Source: Paragordius varius
Taxonomy: Eukaryota; Animalia; Nematomorpha
Reading direction: 5' to 3'
DNA: 64,000 bases
NCBI GenBank assembly: GCA_964247055.1
Contig: OZ176052.1
Span: forward strand, 4,650,001 to 4,714,000
Part shown: positions 7,953 to 49,881 of the stretch, one piece after another
How positions within the stretch are numbered: position 1 is the first letter of the stretch
Layout: every line of letters begins with the position of its first letter
The notes under the pieces: generated by a model
The model's input: the letters and a program-made list of their open reading frames with translations, nothing else
Told to the model about the DNA's origin: nothing
Database searches by the model: none
Translations under genes and position numbers: made by a program

Positions 7953-8338
7953 TTAAAAAAAGTAAAAAATAAATGATAGGACTAGAGCGCAAATGAGACA
8001 TAGGAATATTGATTCAACATTAAAATAACCAGGAGATAAGTTTAATACCGGATAATTATTATTAAAATTTTGTTTTTGACTAAAATTTATGGTATTATTG
8101 TTATGATATTTGGCAGTTATTGGTAATGAATATTGGGCATTGTTTTCATGAAAATCGGGAAAATCATTTTTTTGTATAGTATCCACGGCAGATGCAAATA
8201 AAAGAAATAAAAAAATTGTTAAAGGCCAATTAAATAAACTTTGTTTTGCGACATACAGGGTGTAATATGTGACTAAAAACCCAACAGCCATGTGCACTAA
8301 AGAATGAAAGAGAAAATTAATATTAGAATAATTCGATG
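7953..8338 (-). CDS. Hydrophobic terminal exon, probably the last exon of SMPD4
   Basis: Open frame with TM-like segments. It is preceded by CTAAC, a T-rich tract and an AG at 8340-8339 (phase 1), matching the phase-1 SMPD4 donor at 17760. SLFNWPLTIFLFLLFASAV resembles the remembered vertebrate SMPD4 C-terminus (SLFCVGPL..LYASAM). Confidence 0.5.
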
Positions 8339-9837
8339 CTAACATTAAAATAAATTTTTTAAAATAAAATTACGTTAGTTATTAATACAGTAAAATATGT
8401 AATTTTCCAGACAAATTTACAAACTAACAGACATAATTTTTTTATAACAGACAGAGTGTTAAAATCAAAAGATTAAAATTTTTAATTGGCGGACAAATAT
8501 TTTTTCAACGGACAATTTTTTTTATACGGACATAAATCCGAAATATAATAGGGTAAGAGGAGCTCTTATCTATAACACTGGACAACATTTCTGCCACTCG
8601 AGTTTTTTGCATTTTTTGATATTTGGTATCATTCTAACAATAAATCTGAAATAAAAATTATAACTCCTTGTAAGTTTTGTATAATTTTATATTTTTGATT
8701 ATGCGCCTTCTTTATCAAAATTTTACTAAAAAATGTTTTTCTTTGAAAATATACAAATAATGCCCATTTGTATTATATCATTCGAAAAAGTAATAAAAAC
8801 TATAAAATGCATACTAATATGTATTACATCGACAGTTATTATTGGACACAGAAGCGACAAACGCGCGAACCGAGAGCTTTTTTTTATAATATATTTTTAA
8901 AACTAATGGATCAAAATAGCTCAAACTTTGTCTAGATGGTAATGAATGTCCAAAAAAAGATAACACAAGAATGTTTTTTTGTGTGAAACATTTTTTTATT
9001 GCTTTTATGTCACTCAAAACAGCCATTTTTAAGTTTTTTGTTTTTTATAAATTACCATCTCATCAATATTAATTTATTTTCTTTACAAGGCTGATAATTT
9101 CTAAATTTTAAAGATAAAAACAAAGTTTAAGGTATTTTCAATCTTTAGCCATTATGTAATAAATTTACAGTTATAACTATGCATTTTAGTATCTAGGTAA
9201 AATATTTTATTTAAAAAGCAAACCAAAAGCTTTTTCAAACATTCTTTTTAAATTAAATACTAATATAACCCTAATAATTATATTAAAATAATTTATATGA
9301 TTTTCAAATTAGTTTGTCTGTGAAAATTCTTGACTTATTTAAGGATTGAAAATATCGACCATTTATCATCATTTAAATGACTTACTACCATTTTAAGGAT
9401 ACAGTTTTTTGCGCACTTTTGAATGATATAAAATACATGGCTTCATATCTAAAACTTTTAATTTTAAAAAATTATCAATAAACTCTAATATAAAAAAAAA
9501 TTCGTGGGTGTAAGACCATTTTTCTTTTCAGATATACTAATTCTGTACTTTAATGAAATAAATTTTAAATTTGCAAGAATGGCAGTTAAAAAAAGTTAAA
9601 ATTTGTTGTCTAGTGTAATATTGAAAAATAATAACCCTATGAATTCTAGTCGGCTAAATGTTTACTTTGTATTTTATAAGAAGCTTTAAAATTATAACAT
9701 AGCATTTGATACTCACCGACTTAAGAATAAACCATTTTTGATTTAATATTAACTAATATATTAAATGAATAGGATATAATAAATCTCGCATTTAACTAAG
9801 GCAAAATATTATTTCTTTTGCATTATTAACACCAATC

Positions 9838-9899
9838 GGGGTGCAAAGTCCGACTCCCACCTCCGCGTGGTGCACCCTGGTTAATACCAACGGGAGCGG
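9838..9899 (+). ncRNA. Predicted minimal HDV-like self-cleaving ribozyme at the RTE 5' end
   Basis: P1 GGGGTGC 9838-44 / GCACCCT 9872-78 (G1-U wobble). P2 CTCCC 9854-58 / GGGAG 9892-96, extendable by CCG/CGG. P3 ACC/GGT with loop TCCGCGT. P1.1 CC/GG 9879-80. J4/2 CCAAC 9887-91. Confidence 0.8.
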
Positions 9900-10181
9900 C
9901 AAAGGAAAGAAATCATCTGTATGGGGTGTGGTGGAAAAAATAAACTACCATTATTTTTTTTTCCTATAAAATACCACAATACCTGCATTCACACAGATGA
10001 TAAAGCGGGTTTATCTGGCGCTATAACCAGTTGCTAGAAACAACCAATTTGTAATATATGTAAGCGGAGATGGAACTCCGTAAGCCCAGAAAGGCAATTC
10101 CATAGGTCAGGGACACCGAAATAGTCTCTTGATTTGCAAAGGCATGCAAATTGTAAAACAATCGCCTTAATCATACCGTAT

Positions 10182-13100
10182 ATGAAAATAATGAATGAAT
10201 TGACAACACTTTTAAACAATGATATATATTTTAAAAATGATAATATTAATCTTACAAATAATTTTATTAATGATATTAATATATGTGATAATCTTAATTT
10301 TGATAATAATATTAATTTACATGATAACAATATTAATGCTCTCCTCAAAAACCACAAACATCAAAAAACACCCAACAATATGGTAAAACCACTTAAGATC
10401 GGCACTTGGAATATCTCGACGCTAGTCGGTAGATCAAACTTAGTTATCGACCAAATAAAAGAGAAAAACATTGACATCTGTTGCCTCCAGGAAACAAGAT
10501 ATAAATCTGAGGGAAAGCTGAATATAGACAACTATACAATTTTCTACAAAGGTCAAATGAAAGGCCAACATGGAGTGGCTATAGCTATTAAAAATGAATA
10601 TTGTGATAATATAATAGAAGTAAACAGACACAACGAAAGAATTATCCAAATACGTATCGGCTTTAAAAAACAAATTCTTAACATACTTTCCATCTATGCT
10701 CCCCAGTCTGGATTAAGCGAAGCAACCAAACAAGCCTTTTGGAACCAACTATACGACATTTCCCATGCAATACCTCCAAATGACAAAATTTTTATAGGTG
10801 GAGATTTCAATTCCCACGTTGGCACTAATGGTGAAGACTATATGAGAATACATGGAGGAAACGCTTTTGGCAGCCGTAACAAAGAAGGTGATATATTATT
10901 GGAATATTGCGCATCTCTTAGACTTACTATCTGCAATACCCTCTTCACGAAACCAGCAAAGAAATTAATAACTTATACAAGTGGTAATCAAAATTCTATG
11001 GTAGACTACATTTTAACACCCATTCAAGATAGAAAATTCATTAAAGACTCTAAAACATACCTTACTGACACGCAACATAAATTAATTGTAGCAATAATAA
11101 CAATAAACAAATCCTATTACCATAGTAACCAGAAACCTAAAATAAACTTAGAAAAATTACACCTTCCTGATCTTAAACTTCAACTCTCAGAAACTGTCAA
11201 TGCATCGCTTAGCCTCAACCACAAAACATCTGAACAAGCTTGGGATAATTTTAAAAACAGCATCATCCCAAATGTGCTTAATTGCTGTGGCAGAAAGAAA
11301 ATATACAGGAAAAAACAACAATCAAATTTGTGGTGGTCAGAATCAATAAAACCTTTAATTAATATTAAACGCAATAACTATAAAAGATGGAAACAAACAA
11401 AAGATAAAAGAGACTTGGAATCATATATCAAATCAAATAAAAATTTACAACAAGCCATCAATATTTCAGCCAACAAAAAAGCTTTGGATTTAGCTAAAAA
11501 ATTAGATTCAGTTAACAATAATAAAAAGGACATTAAACAAATTTCCTATATTAAAGATAAAGATCAACAACTAGTAACTGAGTGGAGTGACATAAGCAAT
11601 GTCTGGACAACGTATTACAAAGAACAATTTGCACAAAAACATGATTTTGAAACAATAAACCAACCACCAGCAATTGGTCCTCGACCACTGATAACAACAG
11701 ACGATGTAAGAGAAGCCTTGGCCAAGATGAAAAATAACAAAGCTACAGGTCCATCTGAACTCAGCTGTGACATGATCAAAGCTTTACCACAATGCATTAT
11801 ACATTTAACTAACATATTCAATCTAATCTTATCAACAAATCGCATCCCTAATGATTGGTCAAAAAGCACCATCATACCCATTTATAAAAATAAAGGAGAC
11901 ATACTCGTTTGCTCCTCCTACAGACCACTAAAGTTATTGGAACACCCGTTAAAAATTTTTGAATCCATTATTGAATCAAAACTAAGATCAATCGTTAGTA
12001 TACAGGAATCACAATATGCCTATAAACCAAACAGTAGCACAATTGATGCAATCTTCATTTTGAGAAGATTGCAAGAGAACTATTTAGCGAAAAATAAAAA
12101 ACTATATCATGTTTTTATTGATTTACAAAGGGCCTTTGATTGTATCCCCAGAAAGTTGATCACATCCACACTACGAGCCAATAATGTAGATGATTGGATA
12201 ATTAAATCAATAGAAATGATGTACTACAAAACAACAAACTGCGTCAGATTAACACTAGGTAACACAACACAGCTTTTGTTCCAAACGAATCTGGTCTTCA
12301 TCAAGGCTCCATCCTAAGCCCTCTACTCTTCATTTTAATAATGGATTACCTAACAAAAGATATAAAACAAGGCCCACCATGGGAACTTATCTATGCGGAC
12401 GACATTGTCCTCACCGCAACATCAATGGAAGCATTAAATCAAAAGTACAACACATGGAAATCACACTTAGAAAAGGGTGGAATGAATATAAATATAAGCA
12501 AAACAAAGGTAATGATAACGGGTGAAACTGTATATGAACGACCTAAGTTTCCATGTGGAGTATGTGATTTAGATGTTAAACTTAATTCAATCCTATGTAC
12601 ATCATGCAATAAGTGGGTACACAAAAAGTGCTCGCTTATAAAAGGGAAACTAATCAATAATGACAAATTTATATGTGAATCATGTAAAAATAAAACAATA
12701 AATCACTCATCCACTTCCCTAAATTACGTTTATATGGCAGACACCAAAATCGAATTGGTGAATAATTTCAAATACTTGGGTGATGTCATACATTGCCTAG
12801 GTGGAATAAACCAATCAGTTAAATATAGATCCCAACAGGCTTGGGTAAAATATTATCAACTTAAATTTGTCCTCAAAAATAAACACATATCAGCAAAAAA
12901 CAAAGGTTTGATTTACAAAGCCGGCATACGTCCCATACTCCTGTATGGTTGCGAAACGTGGCCGATGACAGATTCAATCGAGAAAAAACTAATGAACTTA
13001 GAAAAACGGATACTAAATTTATTCCAACCCAATAAGTCAAATTCAAATTTACATCAACTGTACCAAATTGAACCTTTAAATGTCATGCTCAGAAAAAATA

Positions 13101-13312
13101 GGCTCAGATATTTCGGACACATCAAACGTGCTCCAGAACAATGGACAAATAAAATTTTATCCCTACATCCCGAAGGTAACAATCGCAGGGGCAGACCAAC
13201 ATTGAACTGGGAAAAAACAATAAATAATGATTTAAGTGTTGCCAACATTGATGATAACGCCTGGCAGGATCGCAAATATTACAGACAGCTTCTATACGTA
13301 TACAATGGCTAG
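10182..13312 (+). CDS. APE endonuclease-reverse transcriptase with an embedded Cys/His (PHD-like) module and one -1 frameshift near 12270
   Basis: IGTWNISTL, CCLQETR, IYAPQ, IGGDFNSHVG, YRPLKLLEH, FIDLQRAFD, (shifted frame) GLHQGSILSPLLF, YADD, FKYLG, RLRYFGHIKR, RGRP. Confidence 0.93.
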
Positions 13313-13599
13313 CCATTACACAAAGACGATACGATATATTAACACCAATCATAATGTAATCTATTTGTAAAATTTAAAAAACCTTATCATAACTATATTC
13401 ATTTCAAAGAAACTTTTTTACTACTGAAAAATAATAATAATCCAATTTTTCATCTTAATAGTCTTATTTTTACAATGTTTCCAATCTTATTATAAGGTTT
13501 GATCGAAAATATCAATAGTCTAATGGGCTTCTACACTGACTGTATTTTTAGATTATGTAACATATCAACTCTCTTTGTTACATTGTTAGGTGGGACAAC

Positions 13600-14100
13600 T
13601 TTCAATTAACGACAAGATGGGACTCTTCTTAATATTAAACATCTACCGTATAATCTCAATAAGCAGACGAGTAAATACTAATCGTCTGCTTTTAACATCA
13701 ATTATAACTGCAATATAATGTAATAGAGACATTAATTTATTAAAATAATATTTATATGAAATAACATCAATATAAATCAATAGTAAAAAAATAAATAATG
13801 GTGAAAAAAATAAAAATAAATGCCTTAAAAAATATCTATGTCCGAAAACAATTACAGATTAACCCTATGGATCGCAATAAATTAGAACGGGAACAAGTTT
13901 TACAGTTTTTTACACTAATGAAGAGATTTTCAACTATTAAATATATGCCTGCGGTTGAAATATAAAATATTCAATGATGATTTATATAATAATATTTTAA
14001 TCATCCCATACATTATAAATAATGTCTATACACCGTATTATCTAAATAAGAAAATGATATTAGCTATGAAAAAATAGATTCAACTTAAATGATTCACAAC
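13600..14100 (+). pseudogene. Old degenerate transposase copy in the left arm, pointing inward
   Basis: TGTCCGAAAACAATTACAGATTAACCCTATGGATCGCAATAAATTAGAA (~13829-13877) aligns with TGTCCGAAAACAGGCTCAGATTGAGCCTATAAATCGCAATAAAATAGAA (~14660-14708), i.e. VRKQLQINPMDRNKLE vs VRKQAQIEPINRNKIE. Weaker matches on both sides. Confidence 0.75.
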
Positions 14101-14587
14101 AAAAATCATATGAATTTTCAGGTAATAAATTTAATTTTTTTAAACAACCAGTCTCATCCATATAATATATGTCGCTATGTATAAACTGTAAAATTTCCCA
14201 TGCATAAGTATACCTATGCTCTATTATTTCTATTTTATTGCGATTTATAGGCTCAATCTGAGCCTGTTTTCGGACAAAAAATTTTTTTAAGCATTTACAT
14301 AATGTAGTTTTTGATATTTTTAATGAAAAAGGAATATTATCTAAAATTTCATCAATTGTTATATTATTATTGTCTTTTAAAATATTTTCGATGGCATCCT
14401 TAAATTTACAATCATCATATTTTGGCTTGCGGCCACTTTTTTTAGGTGGGATGTGAAGGCCGACGTTCAATCGCCTGCGATATTTATAAATTGTTGATCT
14501 GGACATTTTTAAATGTTCATATTGTCCGTCATAGTATCATTCGAAGTGGGCGGATTACTGAGAAGGCTCTTAGCAATTTCATTCTTA
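14060..14587 (-). pseudogene. Tc1/IS630-like transposase N-terminal half (HTH region to DETG), internally deleted
   Basis: IKNEIAKSLLSNP..(fs)MSRSTIYKYRRR..KKSGRKPK..ITIDEILDNIP..ISKTTLCKCLKK..YYMDETG, then joined to arm sequence. Confidence 0.85.
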
Positions 14588-15245
14588 ATTTTAGATAATA
14601 TTCCTTATTCATTAAAAATATCAAAAACTACATTATGTAAATGCTTAAAAAAATTCTTTTGTCCGAAAACAGGCTCAGATTGAGCCTATAAATCGCAATA
14701 AAATAGAAATAATAGAGCATAGGTATACTTATGCATGGGATATTACAGTTTTTGCACAGCGACATATATTATATGGATGAGACTGGAATCAATGATTACA
14801 GCGTTTATCTATATTGTTGGTGTAAAAAGGGAGAATTTCCTACGATTAAACGTAAGCCAAGAGGTAAAAATATTATTTGGCTATGATTGGAATAAACGGA
14901 ATGATAAAATATGAGTATAAATCTGACCCATACAATGGGGATGATATATATCATTTTTTACAGGAATGTTTTAAAATAATACCTTCATCATCCTGTATAA
15001 TTTTAGATAATGCCCCTATTCATCGTTATTCTCGAAATAAAGAATTCGAAAATTTAATTTTTTTGCCACCATATTCACCTCAATTCAATCCTATTGAGTG
15101 TATTTTCCACGAATTTAAACACAAATTACGAGCCCTAAATAAGAAAGATTTAAATATGGATAAAAATATAAAAGAAGTCTCTAAATATTTTATAATAAGG
15201 ATTTAAGTAAATATTATGAACATATAGATAAAATATTAAATAATG
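14588..15245 (+). pseudogene. Tc1/IS630-like transposase, 5'-truncated and frameshifted, containing the catalytic DDE
   Basis: ILDNIP..YMDETG..CIILDNAPIH..LPPYSPQFNPIECIFHEFK. Confidence 0.9.
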
Positions 15246-15289
15246 TTTGTTTAAAAAAATTAAATTTATTACCTGAAAATTCATATGAT

Positions 15290-15790
15290 CTTTTTTGTGA
15301 ATCATTTAAGCTGAATCTATTTTTTCATAGCTAATATCATTTTCTTATTTAGATAATACGGTGTATAGACATTATTTATAATGTATGGGATGATTAAAAT
15401 ATTATTTTATAAATCATCATTAAATATTTTATATTTCAACCGCAGGCATATATTTAAGAGTTAAAAATCTCTTCATTAGTAAAAAAAACTGTAAAACTTG
15501 TTCTCTTTCTAATTTATTGCAATCCATAGGGTTAATCAGTAATTGTTTTTGGACATAGATATTTTTTAAGGCATTTATTTTTATTTTTTTCACCATTATT
15601 TATTTTTTTACTATTGATTTATATTAATGTGATTTAATATAACTATTATTTTAATAAATTATTGCCTCTATTACATTATATTGCAGTTATAATTGATGTT
15701 AAAAGCAGACGATTAGTATTTACTCGTCTGCTTATTGAGATTATACGGTAGATGTTTAATATTAAGAAGAGTCCCATCTTGTCGTTAATT
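15290..15790 (-). pseudogene. Degenerate transposase copy in the right arm (mirror of 13600-14100)
   Basis: Reverse complement of the left-arm degenerate copy. Confidence 0.7.
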
Positions 15791-17760
15791 GAAATTGTCC
15801 CACCTAACAATATAATAAAGAGAGTTGATATGTTACATAATCTAAAAATACAGTCAGTGTAGAAGCCCATTAGACTATTGATATTTTCGATCAAACCTTA
15901 TAATAAGATTGGAAACATTGTAAAAATAAGATTATTAAGATGAAAAATTGGATAATTATTATTTTTCAGTAGTAAAAAAGTTTCTTTGAAATGAATATAG
16001 TTATGATAAGGTTTTTTAAATTTTACAAATAGATGACATTATGATTGGTGATAATAATGCAAAAGAAATAATATTTTGCCTAAGTTAAATGCGAGATTTA
16101 TTATATCCTATTCATTTAATATATTAGTTAATATTAAATCAAAAATGGTTTATTCTTAAGTCGGTGAGTATCAAATGCTATGTTATAATTTTAAAGCTTC
16201 TTATAAAATACAAAGTAAACATTTAGCCGACTAGAATTCATAGGGTTATTATTTTTCAATATTACACTAGACAACAAATTTTAACTTTTTTTAACTGCCA
16301 TTCTTGTAAATTTAAAATTTATTTCATTAAAGTACAGAAAATTGGTCTTACACCCAATTTTTTATATTAGAGTTTATCGATTATTTTTGGCCCCGATTTA
16401 ACATTAAACTCAAAATTTTTAAAATTAAAAGTTTTAGATATGAAGCCGTGTATTTTATATCATTCAAAAGTGCGCAAAAAACTGTATCCTTTAAATGGTA
16501 GTAAGTCATTTAAATCATGATGAAGTTATTTAGGTTTAAATGGTCGAAATTTTAAATCCTTAAATAAGTCAAGCATTTTCACAGACAAACTAATTTGAAA
16601 ATCATATAAATTATTTTATATAATTATTAGGGTTATATTAGTATTTAATTTAAAAAGAATGTTTGAAAAAGCTTTTGGTTTGCTTTTTTAATAAAAATTA
16701 TTATTATCATAAATATTTTACCTAGTGGATACTAAAATGCATAGTTATAACTGTAAATTTATAAGATCAAAAATACCTTAAACTTTGTTTTTATCTAAAA
16801 TTTCGAAATTATCAGCCTCGTAAAGTTTATTTAATTATATTTAATTATCCTTTATCGTTATATTACGGATTTTAACAACTGTTAAAATAAATTAATATTG
16901 ATGAGATGGTAATTTTTAAAAAACAAAAAACTTAAAAATGGCTGTTTTGAGTGACATAAAAGCAATAAAAAAATGTTATACAAAAAAATATTCTTGTGTT
17001 ATCTTTTTTGGACATTCATTACCATCTAGACAAAGTTTAAGCTATTTTGATCCATTAGTTTTAAAAATATATTATAAAAAAAAGCTCTCGGTTCGCGCGT
17101 TTGTCGCTTCTGTGTCCAATAATAACTGTCGATGTAATACATATTAGTATGCATTTTATAGAGTTTTTATTACTTTTTCGAATGATATAATACAAATGGG
17201 CATTATTTGTATATTTTCAAAGAAAAACATTTTTTAGTAAAATTTTGATAAGGAGTTATAATTTTTATTTCAGATTTACTGTTAGAATGATACTAAATAT
17301 AAAAAAATGCAAAAAACTCGAGTGGCAGAAATGTTGTCGAGTGTTATAGATAAGAGCTCCTCTTACCCTATTATATTTCGGATTTATGTCCGTATAAAAA
17401 AAAATTGTCTGCATAATAAAAAATTTGTCCGTAGAAAAAATTTGTCCGTATAATAAAAAATTTATCCGCCAATTAAAAATTTTAATCTTTTGATTTTAAC
17501 ACTCTGTCTCTTATAAAAAAATTATGTATGTTAGTTTAAATTTGTCTGGATAATTACATATTTTACTATATTTTTCAGATTTTATTTTAAATAATTTAAA
17601 ATATCATAAGGAAGTAATTTGATGCACATCAGATTATGAAATAAAACCTATGCTAATTAGCTAATGCCATAGGGAAAAAATATCTGTGATTAAAGCAAAA
17701 AGCTAAAATTTATATATTAACTTAAATTGAAATTTGTCGAATAAAATAGTAGCAACTTAC

Positions 17761-20700
17761 ATAAAAAATAGTAATTGGCCCAATATCTTAAATCTATAAC
17801 TGGTCGAAAAACTGACGGTTTAGGACCAATTAAATTTTTTGCTTTCAATGGTGAAGAGTATAGGTATGATGTTTGATAGCTCCTGTTCCTTTCAAATGTG
17901 ACAAAGGGTGTAAGTAGAAATTGGAGAAAAGTTGAAATCAAATCTCGTTTCATGTATATCAATTTTAATCGTGTTTCATACTATAATCAAAGAAAAAATC
18001 GATTAATAATCTATAAATGATGTAAATTTTGAGGCGTTTTAGATTAGTGACAAGATAAAATAGATTATTTATATATAGGTCTAATATTTGTTTAATATGT
18101 TAAAATAATAACATATAGTTAATACTTATTTAAATTTTATTGTTCAGAAGCTTTATATTTACGGCATTTTATTTAATCATAGGTGTACCATAAATTAAGA
18201 TATTTTTTGTATATAAATTTTTTTGTTAATTTTAAAGAATTGGCCCAAATAGCCTACAACAGTTATATAGTTGCTAAAATAAATACATTTTATTTTTAAA
18301 ATAATAATCAGTAAGGTTTTGTAAAAGAGCATAGTAACCCCTCCCTAATTATCTAAAAGATAATACGATTGCAATAATTTCAAAACACAGATTAACATAT
18401 AACGACTAATATTGTAATTAAATGATTATCTAACCTTTTGATTAACAATTTTAGCCAATATGCACAAAAGTCTAACAAGCCAGGCACATTCATAAGAACG
18501 TATCGGTTTTTCATCCAAAAAGTGATTTATTTTACTCGTATTATGTGTTATGAAAGTTGAGGAATCACTCTAAAATAATAGTATATAATAAAATAAAAAT
18601 AACTGACGTTCAACGAGTGATGAAATAAATAGTTAAAGAATAAAATATAAACCTTATAACCAGAATCAGTTAAGTTTGATCGTTTAGATGATTTGAGCAT
18701 GTGTGGTATCTGAAATATAATATATGTAAGATTATATATATTATTATATATATATAAACCTCAAACATATCTTCCAAACATTTTATGCAAAATTCCAAAT
18801 CTTTGAAACCCTTTTCCATATTAACATGATTGTTATTGGCACTTGTAAACGAATGAGATGGGTACATTCCAAAGTGTTTTTTAACCCATGAACCTAACCC
18901 ACTGTTATGGTTATTTCTAAAAATTTGGAAATTAAAATTATAAGTTGGAATAAGGATATAAATCGTTAAATTAGATATTATCTATTATTTTTATATGTTA
19001 AGCAACGTAAAAACATAAATAAAGAGAGTTTTACTTATGAATATTATTTAATAGCAAATGCTCTCTCTCTCTTTTAAAAGAATATTTTAAAATATAAATT
19101 TCAAAATATAATTTTTTATGGCAAAAAACTTACGGTAAACTATTTTCCAAGACGCTAAAGTCAGGGTTGGCATATGGTTGATTCAAAAATTTATTTTCGT
19201 AAGATGCTGCTTTGTCAATATGGTAATTCTTAGTATTTTCTGGCATTGCCATAAGTGTTAGAAATAAAGGTGAGGTATCTATAACATTCCTTTGTCGATA
19301 ATCGGTTAATAAATGGTTAAATTTGATATAATAATAAGCGTATCGAAAATGGAAAGTCAACCATTCCACAATGATGCCCCTCCCAGTAAACCAACGGCCA
19401 ATTGTTGATAATGTGAAGCAGTTCTTTAATGATAACAGGTGTGAACATAAATATTGTAAGATTCGGGTTGTTTGAAATAAATTGTACCATCCTGGGATCA
19501 AGTTATGTTCTGGAAAAAAATAAAAAATATAAAAATCGAAATTGTCAAAAAATATATAAATTTCATAAAAAAAATATAGTAAAATAAAGTAGGTATAAAA
19601 ATTTTTTTATAAATAATTGATATAACGAAAAAAAGAAAAATCTACCTATTTGAGAATCGTTAAAATAATTTAATTTGCTAAAATATGTGGATCCGTGCTT
19701 TTGCAAATACCAATCACACCAATCATAACTCGTATGGAGTTTGGGCAAAAATTGTGTTTGAATAAAGGATTTAAGCGTTATCATATCCTGATCGCCTGAT
19801 AAAAATAATTAATTAATATATACCATTTACATCATTTCATATTACCCTCAAACGTTCGATTTCACCCTTGAATATATCAGATTTATCCTGGATTTATGAT
19901 CACATATAATAAATTATAAATTTTTAATAACAAAAATTACTTATATTTTTTATAGTTTTAAGAAATTATGTTTCAAATCTACATAATACAAAACAAATAA
20001 TATATTCCATAAAGAAATATTTATTAATGATGAATTATATTAATCCCAAAACACGTAATTTATTTTTGACCGGCAATGTGTTTTGTTTCCAAGATAAAAT
20101 ATATAAAATACATTACTTGAATAGCATTTGTTAAGCAAGAGAATGACGTGATTTTCATCATATATCTGTGCATAGATGTGGGAATAATATAAAAATAAAG
20201 TCATATATTAAAATTGAAAATGTTAAATTATTATTTTATCAAATTAAGATCCAAACTAATTACCCTTAAAATCTTTTTGAGAGTAGCCAGGTTTTTTGCA
20301 TTTAACGGTTCCTGCATCAAGCGATTGAGGTAAAGGCCAAATATGTTTATGTAAAATTGTTTGTTTCCAACAATGTATTTATGTCTAAAAATAAAAAAAT
20401 TTGGGTAAAAACCTGTTTATAAAGATGGGTGGATGATTATCATCGAGTTGGTTCATACACTTCCAGGGTTGGATAAAGGTAAGCCATAAATTCAATACCT
20501 AATATAATATAAATTAGTAATTTAAATCATTCTAACATGCATCATTGATTATATAAGTGTGTGGAATGGTGGCAAATATATCGAGAAAAAATGGGAAAAT
20601 TATATATTGTGTGATATTATTAATATAATAAGATTATGTTTTATCATATATAATGATTCATTAATTAATTTCAACAGTATATCTTGCACAGAATATAAAA

Positions 20701-23090
20701 CATGAATTGCAGTAAATGTTACTAGTTTGTGGCAAATTCTCTAAAATTCAAATAATATTTTTGATACATTTAAATTAAAATATTGGTGACTTTTATTAAC
20801 TCTCAAAAAAGAGATAAGATTATTAAAGTAGCTGCTGGCGTAAGATGCTTGGATATACTAGGAAAGATGAAATTAACAATGAAAAGCTAAATACACAAAT
20901 AAATCCTAAAAAAATATCTTAGAGATGATTTACAAACGAATGTTAACAAGTTAACATATTTTGGCTATGTTTTGCGGTATAATTGTAAAGGTAGAAGGGC
21001 AAAGAAAATGATGCCAATCACAGATGAGGTGATTAGACATGATAAAAGAGCAGACTAAGATGGCATTGAAAGATTGAATGGGCAGTAAAAGATAGAAAGA
21101 AGCAGAAATTAATACTGCAAACTATATACAAAAAAATCGTTTAAGACTTAGGATAACTACCAACCAATCAACTGGGCAATCCTTTATTAGTACTAATTTT
21201 TTGTGGGACACACGAGGAAAAAATGGATAATAATAATCAAAAGGTTGGAGATGTTAACCACCATAAATTTTAATTAATATGTCAAAATAAAATCAATTTA
21301 ATATAAAAACCCTGTTTTGCGTATACCGATGATACCCCTAGTTGCTTTAGCGTTTCGTATAATAAATCATAATTTATCGAATCAAAAGCTTATTTATAGC
21401 GATAAAACACATGTTTAATTCTTAGTGAGACTCTCCAGATGTCATTAATCTACCCACGTTTGATGGTCTCTTAAGCTTTTTCGATTTATAAATCTGACTT
21501 GATTTTCTGGTATTCTAACTGTATAATATTGTGCATCCTGATTTATATTATTTTTAGCAGACCTTAGAGGGGCTATTGAGAGCTATCTTTTGATTCTGGG
21601 AAACATGTGAGAGGTTAAAAGGTAGAATATATCTGTGTATCTCCCAATATACAAAAAAGCCGATGCATTAAAAAGATCGAATCGTAACTCACGCAGTGAT
21701 ATACCATGGTGGTTAAAAAATACAAAACAGAATGCACATTATTGAGTCAGAAATACCAAAAAATTAGGCCGGATTCATGAAAAGAAAAAGCACAAGAGAC
21801 TATATCAAACATGAGAAGGATAATAAAAATATGAGATTATGAACTATGAATGTGTTTTATCGATTACAAACAAGACTTCGATTCGATAAATTGATTTCTT
21901 ATGGGAAACATTGAAGCAACTAGGGGTATCATCGATATAAGCATTCATTTTTTGTGTGTGTACAATAAATTAGTACAAATGAGTGTCCAGTTGATTAGAG
22001 AGACATATACAAATTTGATCATTAACACGGCATTTTTCATATGTAACTGAATATTCATCCAATTTATCAATTATAAAATTTAAGAAAATTTATTCAAAAT
22101 TTCTTAAAACTCATTTTTCTATTAATGCCCAAACTTACCTATTTTAAGTTGGTATGCAATAAATAAATGTTTTAACTTAGCAAATTTAAGATCAAAATAA
22201 ATCTAAAAAGAGTTACCAATTGAAAAGTGGGTAGGATTGGCCAATGCGAAAACATGTATTGAAAGTATTCGTAATAAATAGGATTTATATATTTGGGAAA
22301 TATAATAGCTTTAAATATGGATTGTGGTGAAGTAAGTTTTTGGTTTTCGAAATCTAATCGGTTCCCATCTGGTGTTAAATATAAACCAGAAAAATTGAAT
22401 AAGTAACATAAAAATATTTTATTCATCCTTATTAATTCTGGTGACATCATAAGATTAAAATTTGATAATTTATTTACATCCAACATGATTTCGACATATA
22501 TCTAAAACAGTTTATCATTTGATATATACCTCAATAAATATGATTGCAAGATAATTAGATGAATGGATAGTCGGTAAATTCAAGACATTTTTAAATAATT
22601 TGTGCTTAAAATTTTTTAAAGAGGAATATTTCATTGGGTTAATTTTAACGTTCCTTTGCGTATGATTGTTGAAAAATCTATCGCAATAATTTTGGAGCAA
22701 AAAATCATAAAGAGAATCTTTCAGTGTGAATTGATAATTATTTTCGGTCAAGTTAATTGGATAATAAATAAATTTGGCCAAGTAATATTCAAGCGATGCT
22801 ATATTATATATTGATATTACCGTCAGCTTTAAGTAGTATATCCATAAACACACCATCCCCTCTCAAAAAATTATATATAGACTCAAATTCCAACGACTCA
22901 TCTTCACACAAAGCTTCCAACTGCCACCCATCATTTAGATTAAAAATGCGATTAATAACTACATAAATATCATCCCGTAAATACTAATTGAATTATAAAT
23001 TTATACTTTTTCCTCGATATATTGTAAGTAGTTCGTAAGGTGACAAATTTGATCCGTAATTTGAGGAGTGTTAAAAATATTTTTTAACAT
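17761..23090 (-). CDS. SMPD4: Sphingomyelin phosphodiesterase 4 (nSMase3), multi-exon; last exon uncertain
   Basis: ATG at 23090. IFNLNDGWQLEAL..FLRGDGVFMDILLK, INPMKY, YFQYMFSHWPILPTF, VLNLWLTFIQPWK, PIRSYECAWLVRLL and DLRYWANYYFL match SMPD4 family motifs in order. Confidence 0.88.
20825..21150 (+). mobile_element. Decayed 3' fragment of an RTE-type LINE in an SMPD4 intron
   Basis: CWRKMLGYTRKDEINNEKL..INP and KLTYFGYVLR across frameshifts, typical of the RTE ORF C-terminus. Confidence 0.6.
21324..21937. mobile_element. Foldback MITE with ~240-bp imperfect inverted arms and TA TSD
   Basis: TA|TACCGATGATACCCCTAGTTGCTT ... AAGCAACTAGGGGTATCATCGATA|TA. Arms ~21324-21560 and ~21705-21937. Confidence 0.85.
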
Positions 23091-23165: not shown

Positions 23166-25911
23166 ATGGATCATTCAAACGGACCCTCATTTGTTGGGAT
23201 AAAATTTTGTCAAGAATGGTATTAATAGAAAATTTAACAATTTACAGTAATAATATGTTATATCCAAAGGAAGATAAAGCCAACCGAATTTTATTGTATG
23301 CATGTCGGAATTGTGATTACCGTGAAGTTGCCGATAATAATTGCATTTACGTTAACAAGATAATGCATGAAATTAATGAACTCAGTCAAATAGTCTCGGA
23401 TGTTATTTCGGATCCAACTCTCCCCAGAACTGAAGATCACCCTTGCCCTCGATGTGGTCACAAAGAAGCCGTATTTTTCCAAGCACAAAGCGCACGTGCA
23501 GAGGTTATTTTTTTATCTTGCACTAAAAACATATTAATCCAATCTTTTCACCATAAAATGTAGATATAATTTAGTATAGTATGTTTATTTTACGCTGCTG
23601 TTAGCAATACAAACTTATTTAGGATAAATGCAATTATGTGGCAAAAAATATTGATTACGCTGTGTGAGTAAATTTATTTTACTAGTTTTGAGAAAATTAA
23701 TTCCAACTGAAGGTATTTATAAATAAATCTTTGATGTCACATACAATTGCCCTTCAAGAGTGTCCTTTAACTGTTAAAGGTGATCCTTCAACACTTCAAG
23801 TTGGTCTTTAAAATCTTAAAATTTTGATTTAATCATAATTTCATGTATTTTATTATTTTATCACTAGCGTAAATCTCGTGCTGTTACGCAGCCCGAGAAA
23901 GTCCTTCGGACATCTGGGGGCCATTTGAAAGTGACAATAAAATGATCCACATATGTGGATATTTCGAAACATTATTTAAGACTTCGATTCAAATTGGGGT
24001 ATCTAAATACCCCAGACCAAATTTGAGTTAAGTTTTTAAAAAACTACTGAAGGAAACGGTCCCAATTTAAATTTTTGCTTCTATCCTAATAAAAATTATA
24101 TAAATATGCCAAAATATCTGAATAAAATTTTGTTTTGAAAAAAAAGTTCCGTGTCAAACTACTTCGACGCCGCTAATTTTTTATTTAAATTATATCTAAC
24201 ATTGATAGAAATAGAAAAAGCGGTTTATTTTGTATTATTTCAATTTTACCATTGCACAAATGTCACGTTGACTAAATTTTTACCTTTTGGTTTTAGCTTA
24301 AAATAAGTAATATCAAGTATTTTTGAATAAATTTTTTTATATATTTCGATTATAAATGCAAAATTTTGCCATGATTTCGATTCCTTCCATAGTTTTTAAA
24401 GAATTTAATTTTAAACAGGCCTGGGGTATTTAACTACCCCAATTTGAATCGAAGGACTAAAATGAATGTGTTGTATCCAAGTGTTAATAACTATGATCTC
24501 ATAGGAATTTTAAAACGGTGCATACAAACTAATATATTGTTTAATTGGGCGAAAAATACATACAAAAAATTATTTTTGTGGACTTAATTTTTTAAAAAAA
24601 TGGCATATTACGGGGGGAGCGGGTAAAAAGAGGGTCCAAATTAAAAAAGCGAGTCGACTATGTTCGGCGCAGTCTAAAATAAGTAAACAAAAATCATATT
24701 TGAAATTGAATAGTCCAACACATTTTCGGGAAATTTGTCTCAAAGACAAGATTTTTTTATGGACTTGTGTTTTAAAAAACCCGTTTTTCACACGGGGTGG
24801 GCCCGAACTGGAGGCCTAATTCAAAAAAAAGGCGAAGCTGGGCATTCATTAATGATTACATTTTTTCGATATTTGGATTTGAATGGGTCTACCGGTTTTC
24901 CGGAAACAGATCACAAAGCCACATGACGGATCAGTTTTTAGCGGGTAGCTCTTCACCCAGCAGCTATCATCAAAGAAACGCTTGACTAAAATTTTTGCCT
25001 TTTAACAGGGAATACGTGGAATCTTTATTGAATTTTTACGGTCTCACCTTGGGCGAAAAGAGTCAAAAAATTATTTTTGCGGACTTTGTTTATTAAAAAA
25101 ATTGGCATTTTACAGGGATGAGCGGGTAAAAAGAGGGCCTAGATTCAAAAGGCGAGCCGACTATATTGCGCAATCGAAAATAAGTAAACTAAAATCATAT
25201 TTGAAATTGAATGGTCCAACACGTTCTCCGGAAAATTGTCTCAAAGACACGATTGTGGACCTCTGTTTTCAAAAAAAACCGTTTTTTACACGGGCTGGGC
25301 CCGAACTGGGGGCAGGCGGAACTATTGTCGGGACATTCATTAATGATTATATTTTTCGATATTTGGATTTGAATGGGTTTACCGGTTTTCCGGAAACAGA
25401 TCACAAAGCCAGCATTTTCCAAAAATATAGATTTTTTAACCTAATTATCTTATTTCAACAATATTATTAACATATAAATGTTTTTAATGAAAAATTATAA
25501 ACTAACCCAGAATACTTATATTACATGTTAAATTCTTATAAATAATTAAAATAATTTTAAAAAAATAATAAGATATTCGGTTTTTGAAAGTTAATATTGA
25601 TTGATATGTTTAATATACAAAATACTTAATTATACCATTTGATTGATAAAAAGTTAAAAACAAAATAAAAAAGTTTAAGAACCAAGTTGAAGTTTCGAGG
25701 ACACTCTTGAATTGCAAATGGTATATATTAAACCTTCTTTCCGGTTAATAATTTACAAATAATTTTTTATCAATTAAAACGACTTTTGATCAAATATTTA
25801 TAGCAATCATATATGTAGATATAATACATTGTTTTATTCAACTTTTAGGATGAAATGAGATTATATTACGTATGTACAGACCCAAATTGTGCTCATAAAT
25901 GGACAGAATAG
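23166..25911 (+). CDS. POLR2I: RNA polymerase II subunit RPB9, 3 exons (23166-23218, 23248-23503, 25849-25911)
   Basis: [56 protein letters not shown]|[20 protein letters not shown]. Confidence 0.97.
23980..24483. mobile_element. piggyBac-like MITE (TTAA TSD), copy 1
   Basis: TTAA|GACTTCGATTCAAATTGGGGTATC ... GTATCCAAGTG|TTAA. Confidence 0.85.
24546..25411. repeat. Two diverged GC-richer direct repeats (24546-24921, 25050-25411) with a 128-bp spacer
   Basis: Both start TGGGCGAAAA and end GGAAACAGATCACAAAGCCA, with shared internal blocks. Confidence 0.85.
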
Positions 25912-26199: not shown

Positions 26200-28510
26200 A
26201 AACAAAAATTTACAATAAAAGTAAGCATTAAATAGTAAGTATAAAAAAAGAAAAAAATAGCACATGGATAAAAAATTGTATAAATAGAAACAACAGAAAG
26301 TATGTATCAAGGGTCGTACATGGTGTAATTATTAGAAAAAATGTGTTGTTTTTTTTAATAAATTTGAAAAAAAACAAGATGTTGTTGATGGTGAATTTTT
26401 CTATAAAATATTTATTTTATATTTTTTTGTGAAAAATATTCTACCTATAAAATGGATAGTATTTTACAGGGAATAAACATATTGGACAATCTTGACAATA
26501 ATGAAAATAGCTCACATTCACCAGCAATTCTACCTCATTTATTTAAAACACAGGGTATATAATTATAATTTATGTTAAGATCCAGAACCAACTATTCAGA
26601 AACCCGATATTGATTACTGTGAGAATAACGATCATAATTATGATGATGGCTCGATTTCAGAAGAATCGAATTTTAATATTTGCTTAAATGCAATAGATGG
26701 TTATCAAGATTTATATAACAAGTCCTTAAGTTATTTTTTTTATAATTTTTAGTTACATTAAATGATAGTGTAGCAAATGAAACGACTACTAAAGATATGC
26801 CAGTTAAAAGAAGTATATTGTTTATTAAAGTAAAAGATTATCATTTTTGGACGGAACAAAAAATTAAAAAGGCATACAAAATATTTTCGAATCCTTTTGA
26901 AAACGAAAAACCATCTCGGGAATTTGTTGATATATTAGATATGTCTATTCCAGCAATCAACAAATTTAGGCGAGAGATGGTTTTAGGAATCGAAAAGAAA
27001 TCCAAAAAAACAGGAAGAAAATCAAAACTGGATAATCCAGTTTTGATTGAACTTGTTGAAAAAATTTACAAAAACTCATGCAAAACTACAATTGAGGAAG
27101 TAATATCCCAATTACCCGATTCCCTCAAAGTTTCGAAACCAACAGTACGCAAAATTTTAAAAAAATTAAAAATCACCCGTAAAAGGTGTATTTTGGAACC
27201 TCTCGAGAGAAACTCTCTTGATGTTGTACAAAAAAGAAAATACAATTATGCGCCTCAAACCAGATGAAAAAATATCCTCTCAGGATGAATCGGGATTTTC
27301 CCTTCAACCAAAAAATATTTATGGATAAGCACCTTTAGTGCAATTTCAGACGGTTTTCAAAAAGGTTTAATGAAAATAACATTATAGGAAAAAACTTGTC
27401 ACTACTCTGTATGTTTGGATTAACGGAATCATGAATTTTGAAATTAAAACGGGATCCTTTAAGGGGGACTCATTAAATTATTTTTGGAGAATAGACTACC
27501 TATGTTGCCTGAAGGTTCTTTCATCGTATGCGATAACGCACCAATTCATAAGGCTTCGGGTGCTTGGAGATTTAAGGGATAGGTTGATAATTTTACCCCC
27601 CTTTTTCCCCCAACTAAATCTCATTAAATGTTTTTTTCATGAATTAAAATTTTATTATAACAAGGCACCACGGTGCAAAAGATATTTCGAACAATATTCC
27701 CGAATAAGGCGTTTATGTGAGGAACGCGAATAAAAATCCTTAAAAAAATATTTCGAGTTTTCAAAATATATTTTGTAGCATTAATGGAAAAAAAATTAGA
27801 TAACGAAAATAATTACATGGGTTTTTTTATTGTTTCTCACTAAATGTCATTATTCGGTGGTATTTATAAATATCTTTATTTCAATATTGTATAACTTTTG
27901 TATGATAATATTTTGTGATTTACTCTTTCAACTTATTAATAAATTAAACATTTTATTTAGCCTTATTGATTGGTTATATCACATAATTTTACACAAACCT
28001 AAAATATGAACCATTTACATTGTTTTATAACTTAGTAACAAGAACAATAATGTATATTATGGTTAATTTTGTAAACACAATGGCATATATGGTATGAAAA
28101 TTAGTGCAAAATTAATTTAACAAGCGAAAAAAATGTTTAATTCGATTGATTGCTATTTTTTACCATACATTGCTCTTAAAAAATATTCAGAATTGTTTAT
28201 ATAAGAGCAACCTTTTAATCAGGTAGATTAGATGGTAAATCAAAATTCTTACCATATTAACTCTAAACAACTTATAGTTTTTGCAAAAAAATTATAAAAT
28301 AATATTAGGAGATCAACAACATATTGTTCTTCTCAAAATTAGTAAAAAAATATATTTTCCTAATAATTACTCAATGTACGACCCTTAATAAATAATTTCT
28401 GTTGTTTTTACTTATACAATGTTTAAACCATGTGCTAATCTTTTTTTTCTTTTAAATTTTCTTTTTTTCCATACTATTTAATTCTTGCTTTATTGTATTT
28501 ACCCATGTTT
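26200..28510. mobile_element. Second, older Tc1/IS630-like element with long imperfect inverted repeats
   Basis: ~26200-26440 is an imperfect reverse complement of ~28265-28510 (e.g. AAGGGTCGTACAT, TAGCACATGG, ATGTTGTTGAT). Exact termini not resolved. Confidence 0.7.
26452..27780 (+). pseudogene. Intron-containing Tc1/IS630-like transposase with acidic N-terminal extension; C-terminal half decayed
   Basis: ATG 26452. Introns 26555-26579 (25 nt) and 26730-26752 (23 nt) join in frame to KKTGRKSK..TTIEEV..VSKPTVRKILKK. Then DESGF, CDNAPIH and LPPFFPQLNLIK across frameshifts and stops. Confidence 0.8.
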
Positions 28511-47759: not shown

Positions 47760-49881
47760 CAGTGGTACTCACCAAAAAAATTTGACGGGCCAAATAAAAC
47801 ATATTTTTTTTTCGAGGGCCATGAACCTTATAATGGCAAATATTCCATAGCTATTTGACACATACGCACATATTTTTACTCTAAATCAGCACAATGAATT
47901 TTTTGCAGGTCGCATGTAAATCCAGCTAAAAACTCGTTTTGCACCATTTAGTTTTAAAAATTTAAATATTTTGATAGCAACATTTATTTTGATATTAACC
48001 AATAATTTTTGACAAATTTGGTTTCGCCTCATGGCAGGCCAATCTTAATACGTCTTCCATATGATCATTAGTTAAGCGATTTCGGTATGTATTCTTGATA
48101 CACTTCATTTTTGAATATACCGTCTCACACGTGTAAGTTGATGGAAAAACAGTTAAGATAACTTGAGCGCATTTTTTTATATTTTCATATTTATTTGGCA
48201 CAACTTGCCAAAACTCTACATATCTTTCTTCTCTACGATTTTCCTTAAATATAGCTTCCAGATTGGAATCATTTTTAAAATCAACGAATTCTTCAATGAT
48301 AAGCGCCTGATCAAAACCGAAAAGCTCAAGTTGCTTAATGTTGGATATATCCATTTGTCATGGATTTTCAACGAGTTTTAAGCAATTATGAATATTTTTT
48401 AATTCTTGAAATCTGAATTTCATCTCATAGATAAAAATGTTAAATGATTGTCTATTATTAAATAAATCTCCGCGGTAAATTCCATATTTTCCTTATAAAT
48501 CGTTTTAAGTGTAGGAAAATGTAGGAGTGTTTTATCTGTAAAATCTTGTTTATATATTATTGATTTCTCTTCAAAAGCAAATATATGATTAGCAAATTGG
48601 GTTTTTATTTTGCTTCCTTGAAGACTTGTATTAAAAGTACTAAGTTTATAAGTAATGTGGCAAAGGTAGGCTAAAAAATCCCACCATTTGTCACTATTAA
48701 TTTCCTCGTCAAACTTTTTGTTATCTTTTATAAAAAATAGAATTTCATGTCTTAAATCAAAAAATCTATTCAATACTTTGCTAAGGCTTTGCCATCTCAC
48801 AGCGGTGTACAAAAGAATATGATCAACTGTGGATATCTTTCAGAAGGTTTTTGAATTTTCTGCCACGAATGTTTACTATATCCACAACCGTTTTAATTAC
48901 TAAATTTAGTGATTCATCTTCACGCGAAACCAAGTTTTGCTGATGAATAAAGCAGTGAAAGGATTTTAAAAGAGGAATAAACCCTTTGTTTATTCCAATC
49001 ATAGAGGGACAGCCATCTGTGCAGATCGAAACCAATTTTTTCATAGATATACCATTATTATCGAAAAAAGTGCTAATTATTTCAAGAACACTACCTTTTG
49101 TGGTATTATTCATTGGCAAAAATTTCAAATATTCCTCGTTGATTATGTTGTCGTTGCAAAATCTCACGAAGAGCGCACATTGAGGTGTTGAACTTATATC
49201 AGTGCTAGAATCGATTGCAATACAGAAGTATTTGCAGTTTTTCTAAGCCAATAATTTATTGTTAAAAATATATTTCTTTCCTCATGATTTTCTGGTAATT
49301 TATGAGAATGATGGATTTTAAAATGTCTTTCACTATTGTATTTTTTTATAATTATGTTGTCCTATACAGGTAGCCAAATTGTTATTTAAAACGACAAAAA
49401 AATTATTTTCCCATTCTTTTTTGAAGGAGCGATTTTCATTGGATAATTTACGTTTTTTGGCATTAGATGTCATCCTTTAAATTTATGTTTATATATTATG
49501 TAAAAAATAGGAATATAAATTGAATTATGCTATAAAAAACAGGTCGAAATTTAATGATGTCGAGTTGAAAAATATTTTATAGGAGTGAGTTATAAAAATG
49601 ATGCAGGATTGCAATGACATGTATGTGCAATGGGTGAAAACAAAAAAGAAATGCAATAAAAATTTCAAAAAGAAAAGAAAATAGAATAAAGAAAAAGAAA
49701 CAACGTGTGCCCATCATAAATTTTAAAATCATTTTAATGTAGGAAAATTTTTCTACATTTCAAATTGGGTAAAAAATAAATATTATCAATTAAAATTATA
49801 AGTATCAATATGGTCATAGGGCAATTTTAAAGCACACTCAGGGCCGCATGCGGCCCGCGGGCCGGGGTTTGAGTATCACTG
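47760..49881 (-). mobile_element. hAT (Buster/SPIN-like) transposon, internally deleted and frameshifted transposase (~47995-49473)
   Basis: TIR CAGTG(G/A)TACTCA and perfect 8-bp TSD GTTTAAAT. KRKLSNENRSFKKEW, IAIDSSTD, ICTDGCPSMIG, HCFIHQQNL, VRWQS, FPSTYTCE..SKMK..YRNRL. Confidence 0.93.

Follow-up and report, generated by a model that had tools for sequence, protein, structure and literature searches.

Inverted repeats in mobile elements and fixed palindromes

Long inverted repeats occur in several elements of the Tc1/mariner/IS630 superfamily, such as Bari3, Paris, Minos and Sleeping Beauty, and long-TIR variants of Bari have reportedly been described. The long repeats of Bari3, Paris, Minos and the IR/DR elements measure some hundreds of bp and are not known to include the gene. 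The palindromic family described here shares with these elements the DDE_3 catalytic residues (D, D, E), the TA duplication and terminal inverted repeats (TIRs) with repeated motifs resembling binding sites. It differs from them in a D-E spacing of 29 instead of 34 residues and in a repeat of 4 kb that includes the entire gene, so that there are two gene copies per element. A literature search for a Tc1/mariner element with its gene inside the TIRs found none, within the incomplete coverage of that search.

Internal sequence has also been recruited into the inverted repeats of Galileo, a P-superfamily element of Drosophila in which structural variants and deletion derivatives are abundant; its TIRs do not exceed 1.26 kb, and the copies with the longest ones are non-coding (PMC3573991). 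The Galileo transposase gene was thus never duplicated. The present family likewise has internal sequence in its TIRs and many derivatives, but in this case the extension takes in the complete gene in all detectable copies. Foldback (FB) elements are similar in that almost all of their length consists of two snap-back inverted arms, which in Drosophila consist for the most part of tandem subrepeats with little coding capacity. In contrast, the arms described here each contain a tandem repeat of only about 100 bp (TRF) next to a selected gene with an open reading frame of 313 amino acids.

In maize Mu killer, the TIR and a portion of the transposase gene are duplicated in inverted orientation beside a gene able to read into them. 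The locus is a one-off rearrangement of an element that is not itself palindromic, and its hairpin transcript, siRNAs and heritable silencing have been demonstrated (PMC3440606). In the family analyzed here palindromy is instead the normal state. A last point of comparison is provided by palindromes that do not move. Human Y ampliconic palindromes and plastid inverted repeats are fixed chromosomal structures with near-identical arms, in which the unit diverges between lineages; the differences in the present family are mirrored in the same manner, but the palindrome is mobile.

Anatomy of the window copy

The window is a stretch of 64,000 nucleotides from Paragordius varius (contig OZ176052.1, positions 4,650,001 to 4,714,000). 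The element within it (Table 1) is by itself an ordinary dead transposon copy; it is its family that is unusual. Very probably, the locus is an old and inactive insertion of a cut-and-paste family of the Tc1/IS630 (DDE_3) type that exists natively as a giant palindrome.

A TA borders the element on both sides (8386-8387 and 17569-17570). Inside, 8389-9837 pairs in inverted orientation with 17567-16043, and 13337-14150 with 16056-15244, at an overall substitution identity of ~97% with 17 indels, in agreement with the inverted arms of ~2.3 kb and the TA target duplication described in the initial annotation. For the outer part, the substitution identity is 97.6%, while the gapped identity is as low as 82.8% because of 17 indel events; for the inner part, the substitution identity is 96.7% (identity 96.6%). 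The divergence between the arms amounts to 2.4-3.3%, with ~59 substitutions and >17 indels. The right terminus reads TAGT, its terminal C being replaced by T. Near the ends lie subterminal direct repeats, presumed to be transposase-binding sites, for which TRF counts 5.3 copies in the intact copy L033 compared to 2.3 in the left arm of the window copy.

Two other mobile elements are found within the arms. The nested non-autonomous element has a TAA duplication and occupies mirror positions in both arms, and its first ~212 bp are part of a high-copy repeat. The empty site of this element is kept in the short-arm family members L034 and L035. The LINE, already noticed in the initial annotation as a one-arm feature, is present in the left arm only, where it is flanked by its own 14-bp target duplication (9824-9837 and 13337-13350), and the corresponding site in the right arm is uninterrupted.

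Palindromes are a known artefact of long-read data, and chimeric foldback reads could give rise to a false palindrome. In L033, the two 4,067-bp arms show 100% identity, a pattern that such an artefact would produce equally well. For the window copy, the arm divergence, the TSD and the one-arm LINE had already been put forward against this explanation; the divergence and the LINE, which has its own target duplication, do tell against it. In addition, the deletions in the window copy are asymmetric, and a dozen loci share the architecture with arm identities graded from 77 to 100%. The probability of an assembly or read artefact is regarded as very low.

Table 1. Features of the palindromic element in the window (L033, intact reference copy)
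Feature	Position	Strand	Description
Whole element	8388..17568	.	Decayed, internally deleted copy of palindromic Tc1/IS630-like transposon (9.2 kb)
Left arm, outer part	8388..9837	+	Starts with terminus CAGTAAAATATG; matches L033 from 793 onward
Subterminal direct repeats, 18-20 bp (CGGACAAAT...)	8490..8532	+	TRF: 2.3 copies
Nested 1,040-bp non-autonomous element, left-arm copy	8576..9615	+	CACTG...CAGTG ends, TAA target duplication
LINE insertion (APE endonuclease, RT, PHD finger; Pfam)	9838..13336	+	ORF broken in two
Left arm, inner part	13337..14150	+	Holds last 28 codons of left transposase gene (14063-14146, minus)
Old transposase relic	13817..13908	+	Resembles residues 77-122; opposite orientation to neighbouring gene
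5' part of left twin gene	14147..14586	-	L033 3576-4018 at 93.9%; tblastn
Central hairpin-capable unit	14148..14786	.	200-bp inverted repeat 14148-14348 / 14587-14786, 238-nt spacer
Right twin gene, codon 62 to stop, frameshifted	14587..15331	+	Matches L033 from 6192; tblastn
Right arm, uninterrupted	15244..17568	-	Mirrored nested element 16265-17343 and subterminal repeats 17387-17482

The palindromic family in the genome

The genome itself was searched with the centre of the window element, and loci L031-L041 were retrieved for comparison. At least 12 related loci are present, and inverted gene pairs are found at 12 of the 12 transposase-bearing loci. L031-L041 are colinear with the window element. 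Full-length copies measure 8.3-8.4 kb and consist of two arms of 4.0-4.07 kb, 98.3-100% identical, around a centre of ~260 bp. Each canonical arm carries one whole, outward-reading DDE_3 (Tc1/IS630) gene. Next to the perfect arms of L033, those of L031 (4,044 bp) are 98.8% identical and those of L032 98.3%. Symmetry is also seen in L038 and L039, two deletion derivatives with arm identities of 98.7% and 96.7%, respectively. The initial annotation had offered a naturally long-TIR element as its alternative, which proves essentially right, given that the whole family is palindromic with a gene inside each 4-kb arm.

The ends of the elements are equally consistent. In either arm the terminus is conserved and accompanied by 20-bp subterminal repeats, the sequence features of terminal inverted repeats that a transposase would recognise, and TA followed by CAGTAAAATATGTAATTATCC is found at both ends of eight independent copies with unrelated flanks (the window copy and seven others). 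In a genome of 74% A+T a single TA is weak evidence, and the weight of this observation comes from its consistency across copies. Together with the DDE_3-type catalytic domain, the TA target duplication and the terminal inverted repeats place the family within Tc1/mariner/IS630 (ITm).

The transposase gene

In L033 a 313-aa ORF is open in both arms and matches DDE_3 (PF13358, E 1.9e-22). The term intact refers here to the open 313-aa frame only; a 21-nt intron is predicted at L033 5913-5933. The residues D127, D205 and E235 are invariant in an alignment with relatives, and 29 residues, not 34, separate the second D from the E. The nearest relatives in the databases share 33% identity, and the catalytic domain of Sleeping Beauty gives a weak match (E 0.17). 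At the N-terminus, helix-turn-helix (HTH) domains are weakly matched (HTH_17, E 5e-6; HTH_7, E 1.6e-3), and the second HTH aligns with those of the relatives. The first helices lie ahead of the first ATG and are separated from it by stop codons common to all copies. The codons in this upstream region look constrained despite these stops, and a search for an upstream ATG exon yielded no convincing candidate. In 12 comparisons the pN/pS of the gene ranges from 0.06 to 0.45, with pS values up to 0.3 relative to L033. As judged from these substitution patterns, the transposase gene has been under purifying selection.

Origin of the central segments

The initial annotation described four alternating transposase segments in the centre of the window copy, none of them complete, and indeed neither tblastn nor the ORFs reveal a complete transposase at this locus. 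The two central segments are genuine remains of the twin genes. The left piece comprises codons 8-130 (14512-14147) plus conserved upstream sequence, and the right piece carries the DDE_3 catalytic domain (Pfam E 1.4e-13). Their overlap, codons ~62-130, forms the central inverted repeat, which corresponds well to the inner hairpin proposed before (~14147-14350 against ~14588-14785). It is 96% complementary over 200 bp, with a fold of -330.6 kcal/mol and a z of -28.8.

The two flanking segments, taken initially for degenerate transposase copies of 500 nt each (13600-14100 and 15290-15790), shrink to ~70-110 nt (about 35-46 residues) each. They represent the old relic and its mirror image in the right arm (about 15486-15577). 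The relic is 79-80% identical by blastn to 14228-14297 and 14638-14708, and tblastn detects it in the window (E 4e-3) and in L033 (E 4e-4). Both arms of L031, L032 and L033, all full-length copies, contain it.

The centre of the window element is colinear with L033 apart from two gaps, at L033 3114-3575 and 4019-6191, and both deletions have 0-3 bp of microhomology at their junctions. The first deletion leaves the left codons in the same reading frame as the last 28, resulting in an ORF at 14060-14506. The window copy is therefore a canonical palindrome minus two pieces, and the central gene segments are what remains of the twin genes rather than products of local foldbacks. The repeated internal foldback events that had been invoked for this locus become superfluous, as two simple deletions explain the centre.

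When the locus is viewed alone, the alternating gene pieces and nested inverted repeats do resemble successive foldbacks, and the palindrome could have been made at this site, either by two head-to-head insertions or by repeated local foldback or inverted duplication. However, the arm order, the nested 1-kb element and the relic recur in palindromic copies at unrelated loci, which have their own TA duplications and flanks different from those of the window copy. This shared architecture must be older than the window insertion. The colinearity of the centre with L033, apart from the two gaps, also argues against local construction, which is considered very improbable.

An inactive insertion of a native palindrome accommodates these observations in a simple order of events. 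The canonical arm comprises the terminal and subterminal repeats, the nested transposon of 1 kb that it captured, and one complete outward-reading transposase gene. Transposase would bind the 20-bp subterminal repeats and move the palindrome as one unit. After insertion at a TA, the element lost two internal pieces by deletions of an ordinary end-joining type. One removed 462 bp within the left gene's 3' half; the other, of 2,173 bp, ran from the inner left arm across the centre into the right gene, which lost its first 61 codons. The left arm also took up the LINE later, and the arms have drifted apart by 2.4-3.3%. Copying between the arms, by gene conversion or by break repair with the opposite arm as template, probably ceased in this copy, and the locus is now probably without function.

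Host-gene context and silencing potential

The SMPD4 neighbour of the initial annotation comes down to one exon-sized ORF on the minus strand (22172-22486), which matches PF14724 (SMPD4) at E 9e-4, under the curated cut-off. A search of the genome with PF14724 gave no match, and its controls were blank too, so that it is uninformative. None of the minus-strand ORFs at 7953-8345, 17717-17962, 18392-18514, 18670-18867, 19130-19501, 19563-19784, 20040-20204, 21615-21737 and 22515-22856 matched Pfam at E up to 10. Bacterial leads from the ESM Atlas for the ORF at 7953-8345 all scored below 0.8 and were discarded. As introns in this genome are 29 nt long, a 9-kb intron housing the element looks improbable; a location beyond the 3' end of the putative SMPD4-like gene would agree better with the expected gene length.

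This arrangement bears on the proposal that the locus acts like Mu killer: read-through from the upstream minus-strand gene would generate a hairpin RNA, and Dicer-derived small RNAs would silence the CAGTAAAAT-terminus family in trans. Mu killer itself provides a precedent (PMC3440606), and the window element resembles it in having both a TIR and a portion of the transposase gene within the inverted duplication. Transposase codons ~62-130 could form a 200-bp stem, next to 2.3-kb arms at ~97%, and the ORF with the weak SMPD4 match lies 4.6 kb upstream and is oriented toward the element. The genome furthermore contains at least two Piwi-domain loci and one Dicer_dimer match; a search for the RdRP family gave no match and is uninformative. 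Nevertheless, the SMPD4 assignment is sub-threshold, and the structure stems from two deletions of a pre-existing palindrome rather than from an inverted duplication specific to this locus. Other family members have the same or a better hairpin potential, with longer and more perfect arms, and since all members are hairpin-capable equally or better, the window locus is not a special silencing source. Moreover, palindromic copies kept their gene under selection while synonymous sites diverged considerably (pS up to 0.3 relative to L033), and L031, L032, L033 and L038, with less diverged arms, look younger than the window copy. A silencing role of the Mu killer type is geometrically possible but quite improbable.

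Concerted evolution of the arms

Among the eight elements with both arms aligned, the two arms of an element are each other's sisters in all but the old copy L040. Each pair of full-length elements differs by 136-155 mirrored substitutions and 22-33 mirrored indels, compared to 0-16 arm-specific changes. This pattern shows, at the sequence level, that the arms evolve in concert in active lineages, where arm-to-arm copying would be the probable means of homogenization. Homogenization appears limited to transposing lineages, since the arms of old copies decay to 77-96% identity. The less diverged arms elsewhere (0-1.7%, compared to 2.4-3.3% in the window copy) weakly suggest that the family kept moving after the window insertion. 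A defect in the processing of hairpins would be one candidate host-level cause of foldback transposons in this genome; Mre11 is present, and a search for SAE2/CtIP gave no match and is uninformative.

It is conceivable, albeit unlikely, that palindromy is a working design and not a scar, with twin genes in 4-kb arms that are kept identical by copying tied to transposition or break repair. If so, the family would possess a built-in proofreading comparable to that of Y-chromosome palindromes, and the window copy would represent the state after arm copying ends. This could have enabled an autonomous Tc1/IS630 lineage, although able to form hairpins, to survive under purifying selection in a genome that is compact and parasite-like. 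The family bears on how far the extension of inverted repeats can go in a still-mobile element, on whether inverted transposase duplications must trigger self-silencing, as Mu killer does, and on what maintains the symmetry of mobile palindromes.

Structure of the window element

The window (G000:C3:4650001-4714000 in the 110.6-Mb, 44-contig P. varius assembly, G000) is very A+T-rich, with a G+C content of about 26%, and contains at 8388-17568 a decayed, internally deleted palindromic copy of a Tc1/IS630-like transposon. The inverted arms described in the initial annotation pair with one another in two segments, and the internal hairpin proposed there (~14147-14350 against ~14588-14785) was borne out as a central inverted pair (Table). 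The outer arms show a substitution identity of 97.6% (32 mismatches), with the low gapped identity of 82.8% being caused by 17 indel events. Directly after the TA, the left end starts with CAGTAAAATATG, and the right end is alike except for its terminal C, which is changed to T. The left arm is interrupted by a LINE, the site of which is uninterrupted in the right arm. An assembly foldback at this locus is ruled out by the arm-specific substitutions, the indels and this one-arm insertion. The ORF of the LINE is split at ~12318-12340.

Table. Features of the window element and of the full-length family copies
Feature	Position	Character	Detail
Outer arm pair	8389-9837 with 17567-16043	inverted	self-comparison
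Inner arm pair	13337-14150 with 16056-15244	inverted	96.7% identity
Central inverted pair	14148-14348 with 14786-14587	inverted	self-comparison
LINE in left arm	9838-13336	APE endonuclease, reverse transcriptase, PHD finger	14-bp target duplication
Nested element	8576-9615, mirror 16265-17343; L033 1043 onward	1,040 bp	CACTG...CAGTG ends, TAA duplication
L033	contig C11	arms 4,067 bp	100% identity, no gaps
L031	contig C3	arms 4,044 bp	98.8% identity
L032	contig C8	arms about 4,040 bp	98.3% identity

A family of palindromic elements

A search of the same genome for other copies, already suggested in the initial annotation, used the 1.1-kb centre of the window element as the query and returned a dozen loci, at each of which two transposase sequences lie in inverted orientation, separated by a few kb. 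Eleven loci (L031-L041) were fetched and compared with the window, three of them full-length (L031-L033). L033 (G000:C11:1381088-1389481) has a total length of 8,394 bp, including a 260-bp centre between the arms. From the outside inward, each L033 arm consists of the terminus and about five 20-bp subterminal repeats, the 1-kb nested element, a ~1-kb spacer with a short transposase-like relic, and a complete outward-reading transposase gene followed by ~0.9 kb of upstream sequence. With an open 313-aa frame in each arm, L033 is the sole copy found in which both twin genes are open, and its arms, identical in the assembly sequence, suggest either a very recent insertion or fresh homogenisation. 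The TA target duplication reported for the window element is common to all eight copies with placeable ends, where TA lies immediately outside the conserved termini and the flanks are unrelated; the palindrome therefore appears to have moved as a unit. The alternative offered in the initial annotation, a naturally long-TIR element, is correct and can now be stated more precisely, as the whole family is palindromic.

At G000:C2:14558477-14560353, two family termini lie inverted and ~1.9 kb apart, which may represent a miniature palindromic derivative. The window also holds a ~236-bp MITE-like unit (28890-29125) with 34-nt inverted ends that begin with TACAGTAAAAAT and are similar to the terminus of the palindromic family.

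Origin of the centre

Without the LINE, the window element is colinear with L033 except for two gaps, representing deletions of L033 3114-3575 and L033 4019-6191 with 0-3 bp of microhomology at the junctions. The first deletion is in frame and accounts for an ORF of 148 aa on the minus strand (14060-14506), in which residues 8-130 are joined to residues 286-313. The second runs from the inner left arm across the centre into the right gene, of which the first 61 codons are lost. The N-terminal half (minus strand) and 5'-truncated catalytic half (plus strand), initially listed among four alternating transposase segments, are indeed present, but their colinearity with L033 indicates that they are what the two deletions left of the twin genes of a pre-existing palindrome. 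The central inverted repeat of 200 bp is the codon 62-130 region kept by both gene leftovers. In place of the degenerate copies of some 500 nt reported in the arms, only a relic of 70-110 nt resembles the transposase (residues 77-122; tblastn E 4e-4 to 4e-3). This relic is common to both arms of full-length L031, L032 and L033 and is therefore old.

The transposase gene

The L033 transposase ORF matches DDE_3 (E 1.9e-22), with weak HTH matches, and aligns at no more than 33% identity to eukaryotic IS630/Tc1-like proteins of Hydra, Thelohanellus, mites, lobster and microsporidia. D127, D205 and E235 are invariant in this alignment, with a spacing from the second D to E of 29 residues in the palindromic family compared to 34 in the relatives. 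Judged by sequence, the family falls in the Tc1/mariner/IS630 group on the strength of its catalytic domain, the duplicated TA target and the inverted termini. Purifying selection on the gene is evident from pN/pS values of 0.06-0.45 in twelve comparisons and an excess of third-position changes, and persisted during arm homogenisation and family divergence.

Codons 5' of the first ATG look constrained, as the divergent copy L037 has synonymous changes there, and two stops lie further upstream in all transposase copies. Excision of a candidate 21-nt GT...AG segment (L033 5913-5933) would remove both stops. This predicted intron is plausible in the host because the gene for the RNA polymerase II subunit RPB9, which lies in the window, contains a clean GT...AG intron of 29 nt (23219-23247), removal of which restores a conserved 14-residue motif. 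For introns as short as 29 nt, the only reports are from myxobolid myxozoans and Dicyema (PMC13644364).

Another IS630/Tc1-like element, at ~26217-28491 of the window, is unrelated and is not a palindrome. Its inverted ends, ~125-270 bp long, are of the ordinary kind, and it shares 30% protein identity with the transposase of the palindromic family (tblastn E 7e-21). Three adjacent ORFs of 114-130 aa at 47995-49167 (minus strand) may be remnants of another transposon, suspected by eye to be of the hAT type. The JMJD4 gene in the window has at most 40% identity to any database protein, the named matches being mostly from arthropods and also from sponge and corals. The G+C content, the 29-nt intron and the transposase relatives fit a fast-evolving animal with a compact genome, of the kind known from myxozoans or dicyemids.

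Concerted evolution of the arms

In the inner-arm tree, based on eight elements with both arms aligned, the two arms are sisters within each element, with the exception of the very old L040. In the four-way full-length comparison, any two elements differ by 136-155 substitutions and 22-33 indel events shared by both arms of each, and only 0-16 substitutions are arm-specific. The nested 1,040-bp element is the clearest case of mirroring between the arms. It occupies mirror sites and its empty site is kept in the short-arm copies L034 and L035, and it therefore represents a single insertion copied to the other arm. Furthermore, internal deletions are mirrored across both arms in L038 (C2) and L039 (C5), and both twin genes of L032 (G000:C8) carry the same 1-bp frameshift. 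The arms of older, broken copies are 77-96% identical, and homogenisation is therefore not a permanent property of inserted palindromes. It would accompany activity, with transposing lineages undergoing conversion or the repair of breaks; alternatively, it might end after the loss of symmetry.

The nested element is non-autonomous and is CACTA/CMC-like in two hallmarks, its CACT(G/A)GACAACA ends and the duplicated TAA target. Over the first ~212 bp it matches a short repeat that is very abundant in the genome (826 first-look candidates, 88-89% identical).

Silencing potential and relation to known systems

The initial annotation proposed a Mu-killer-like locus, in which RNA transcribed through the window element folds and silences the family. 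A transcript crossing the locus could fold, with -330.6 kcal/mol (z -28.8) for the centre by itself, and the genome contains at least two Piwi-domain loci and one Dicer-like match. However, hairpin potential is a family trait and is larger in every intact member, so that the window locus has no special claim. The putative SMPD4 neighbour corresponds to a single ORF match below threshold, and the other flanking ORFs gave no matches in domain and related searches. In addition, copies with less diverged arms than the window element suggest that the family kept moving later, although arm conversion could mimic this. Such silencing by the window element is conceivable, but very improbable.

With the transposase gene contained in its repeats, the palindromic family is an extreme of inverted-repeat extension. 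In Galileo, the repeats extend to 1.26 kb at most and always leave the gene outside (PMC3573991). An FB-type element is rejected because the arms are not tandem arrays. In their dynamics the arms are similar to those of fixed palindromes undergoing gene conversion, but the palindromic family differs in being mobile. A literature search found no Tc1/mariner element described with its gene inside the repeats, which is suggestive only. Taken together, the structure in the window is real and its locus ordinary; it is the palindromic family that is noteworthy.
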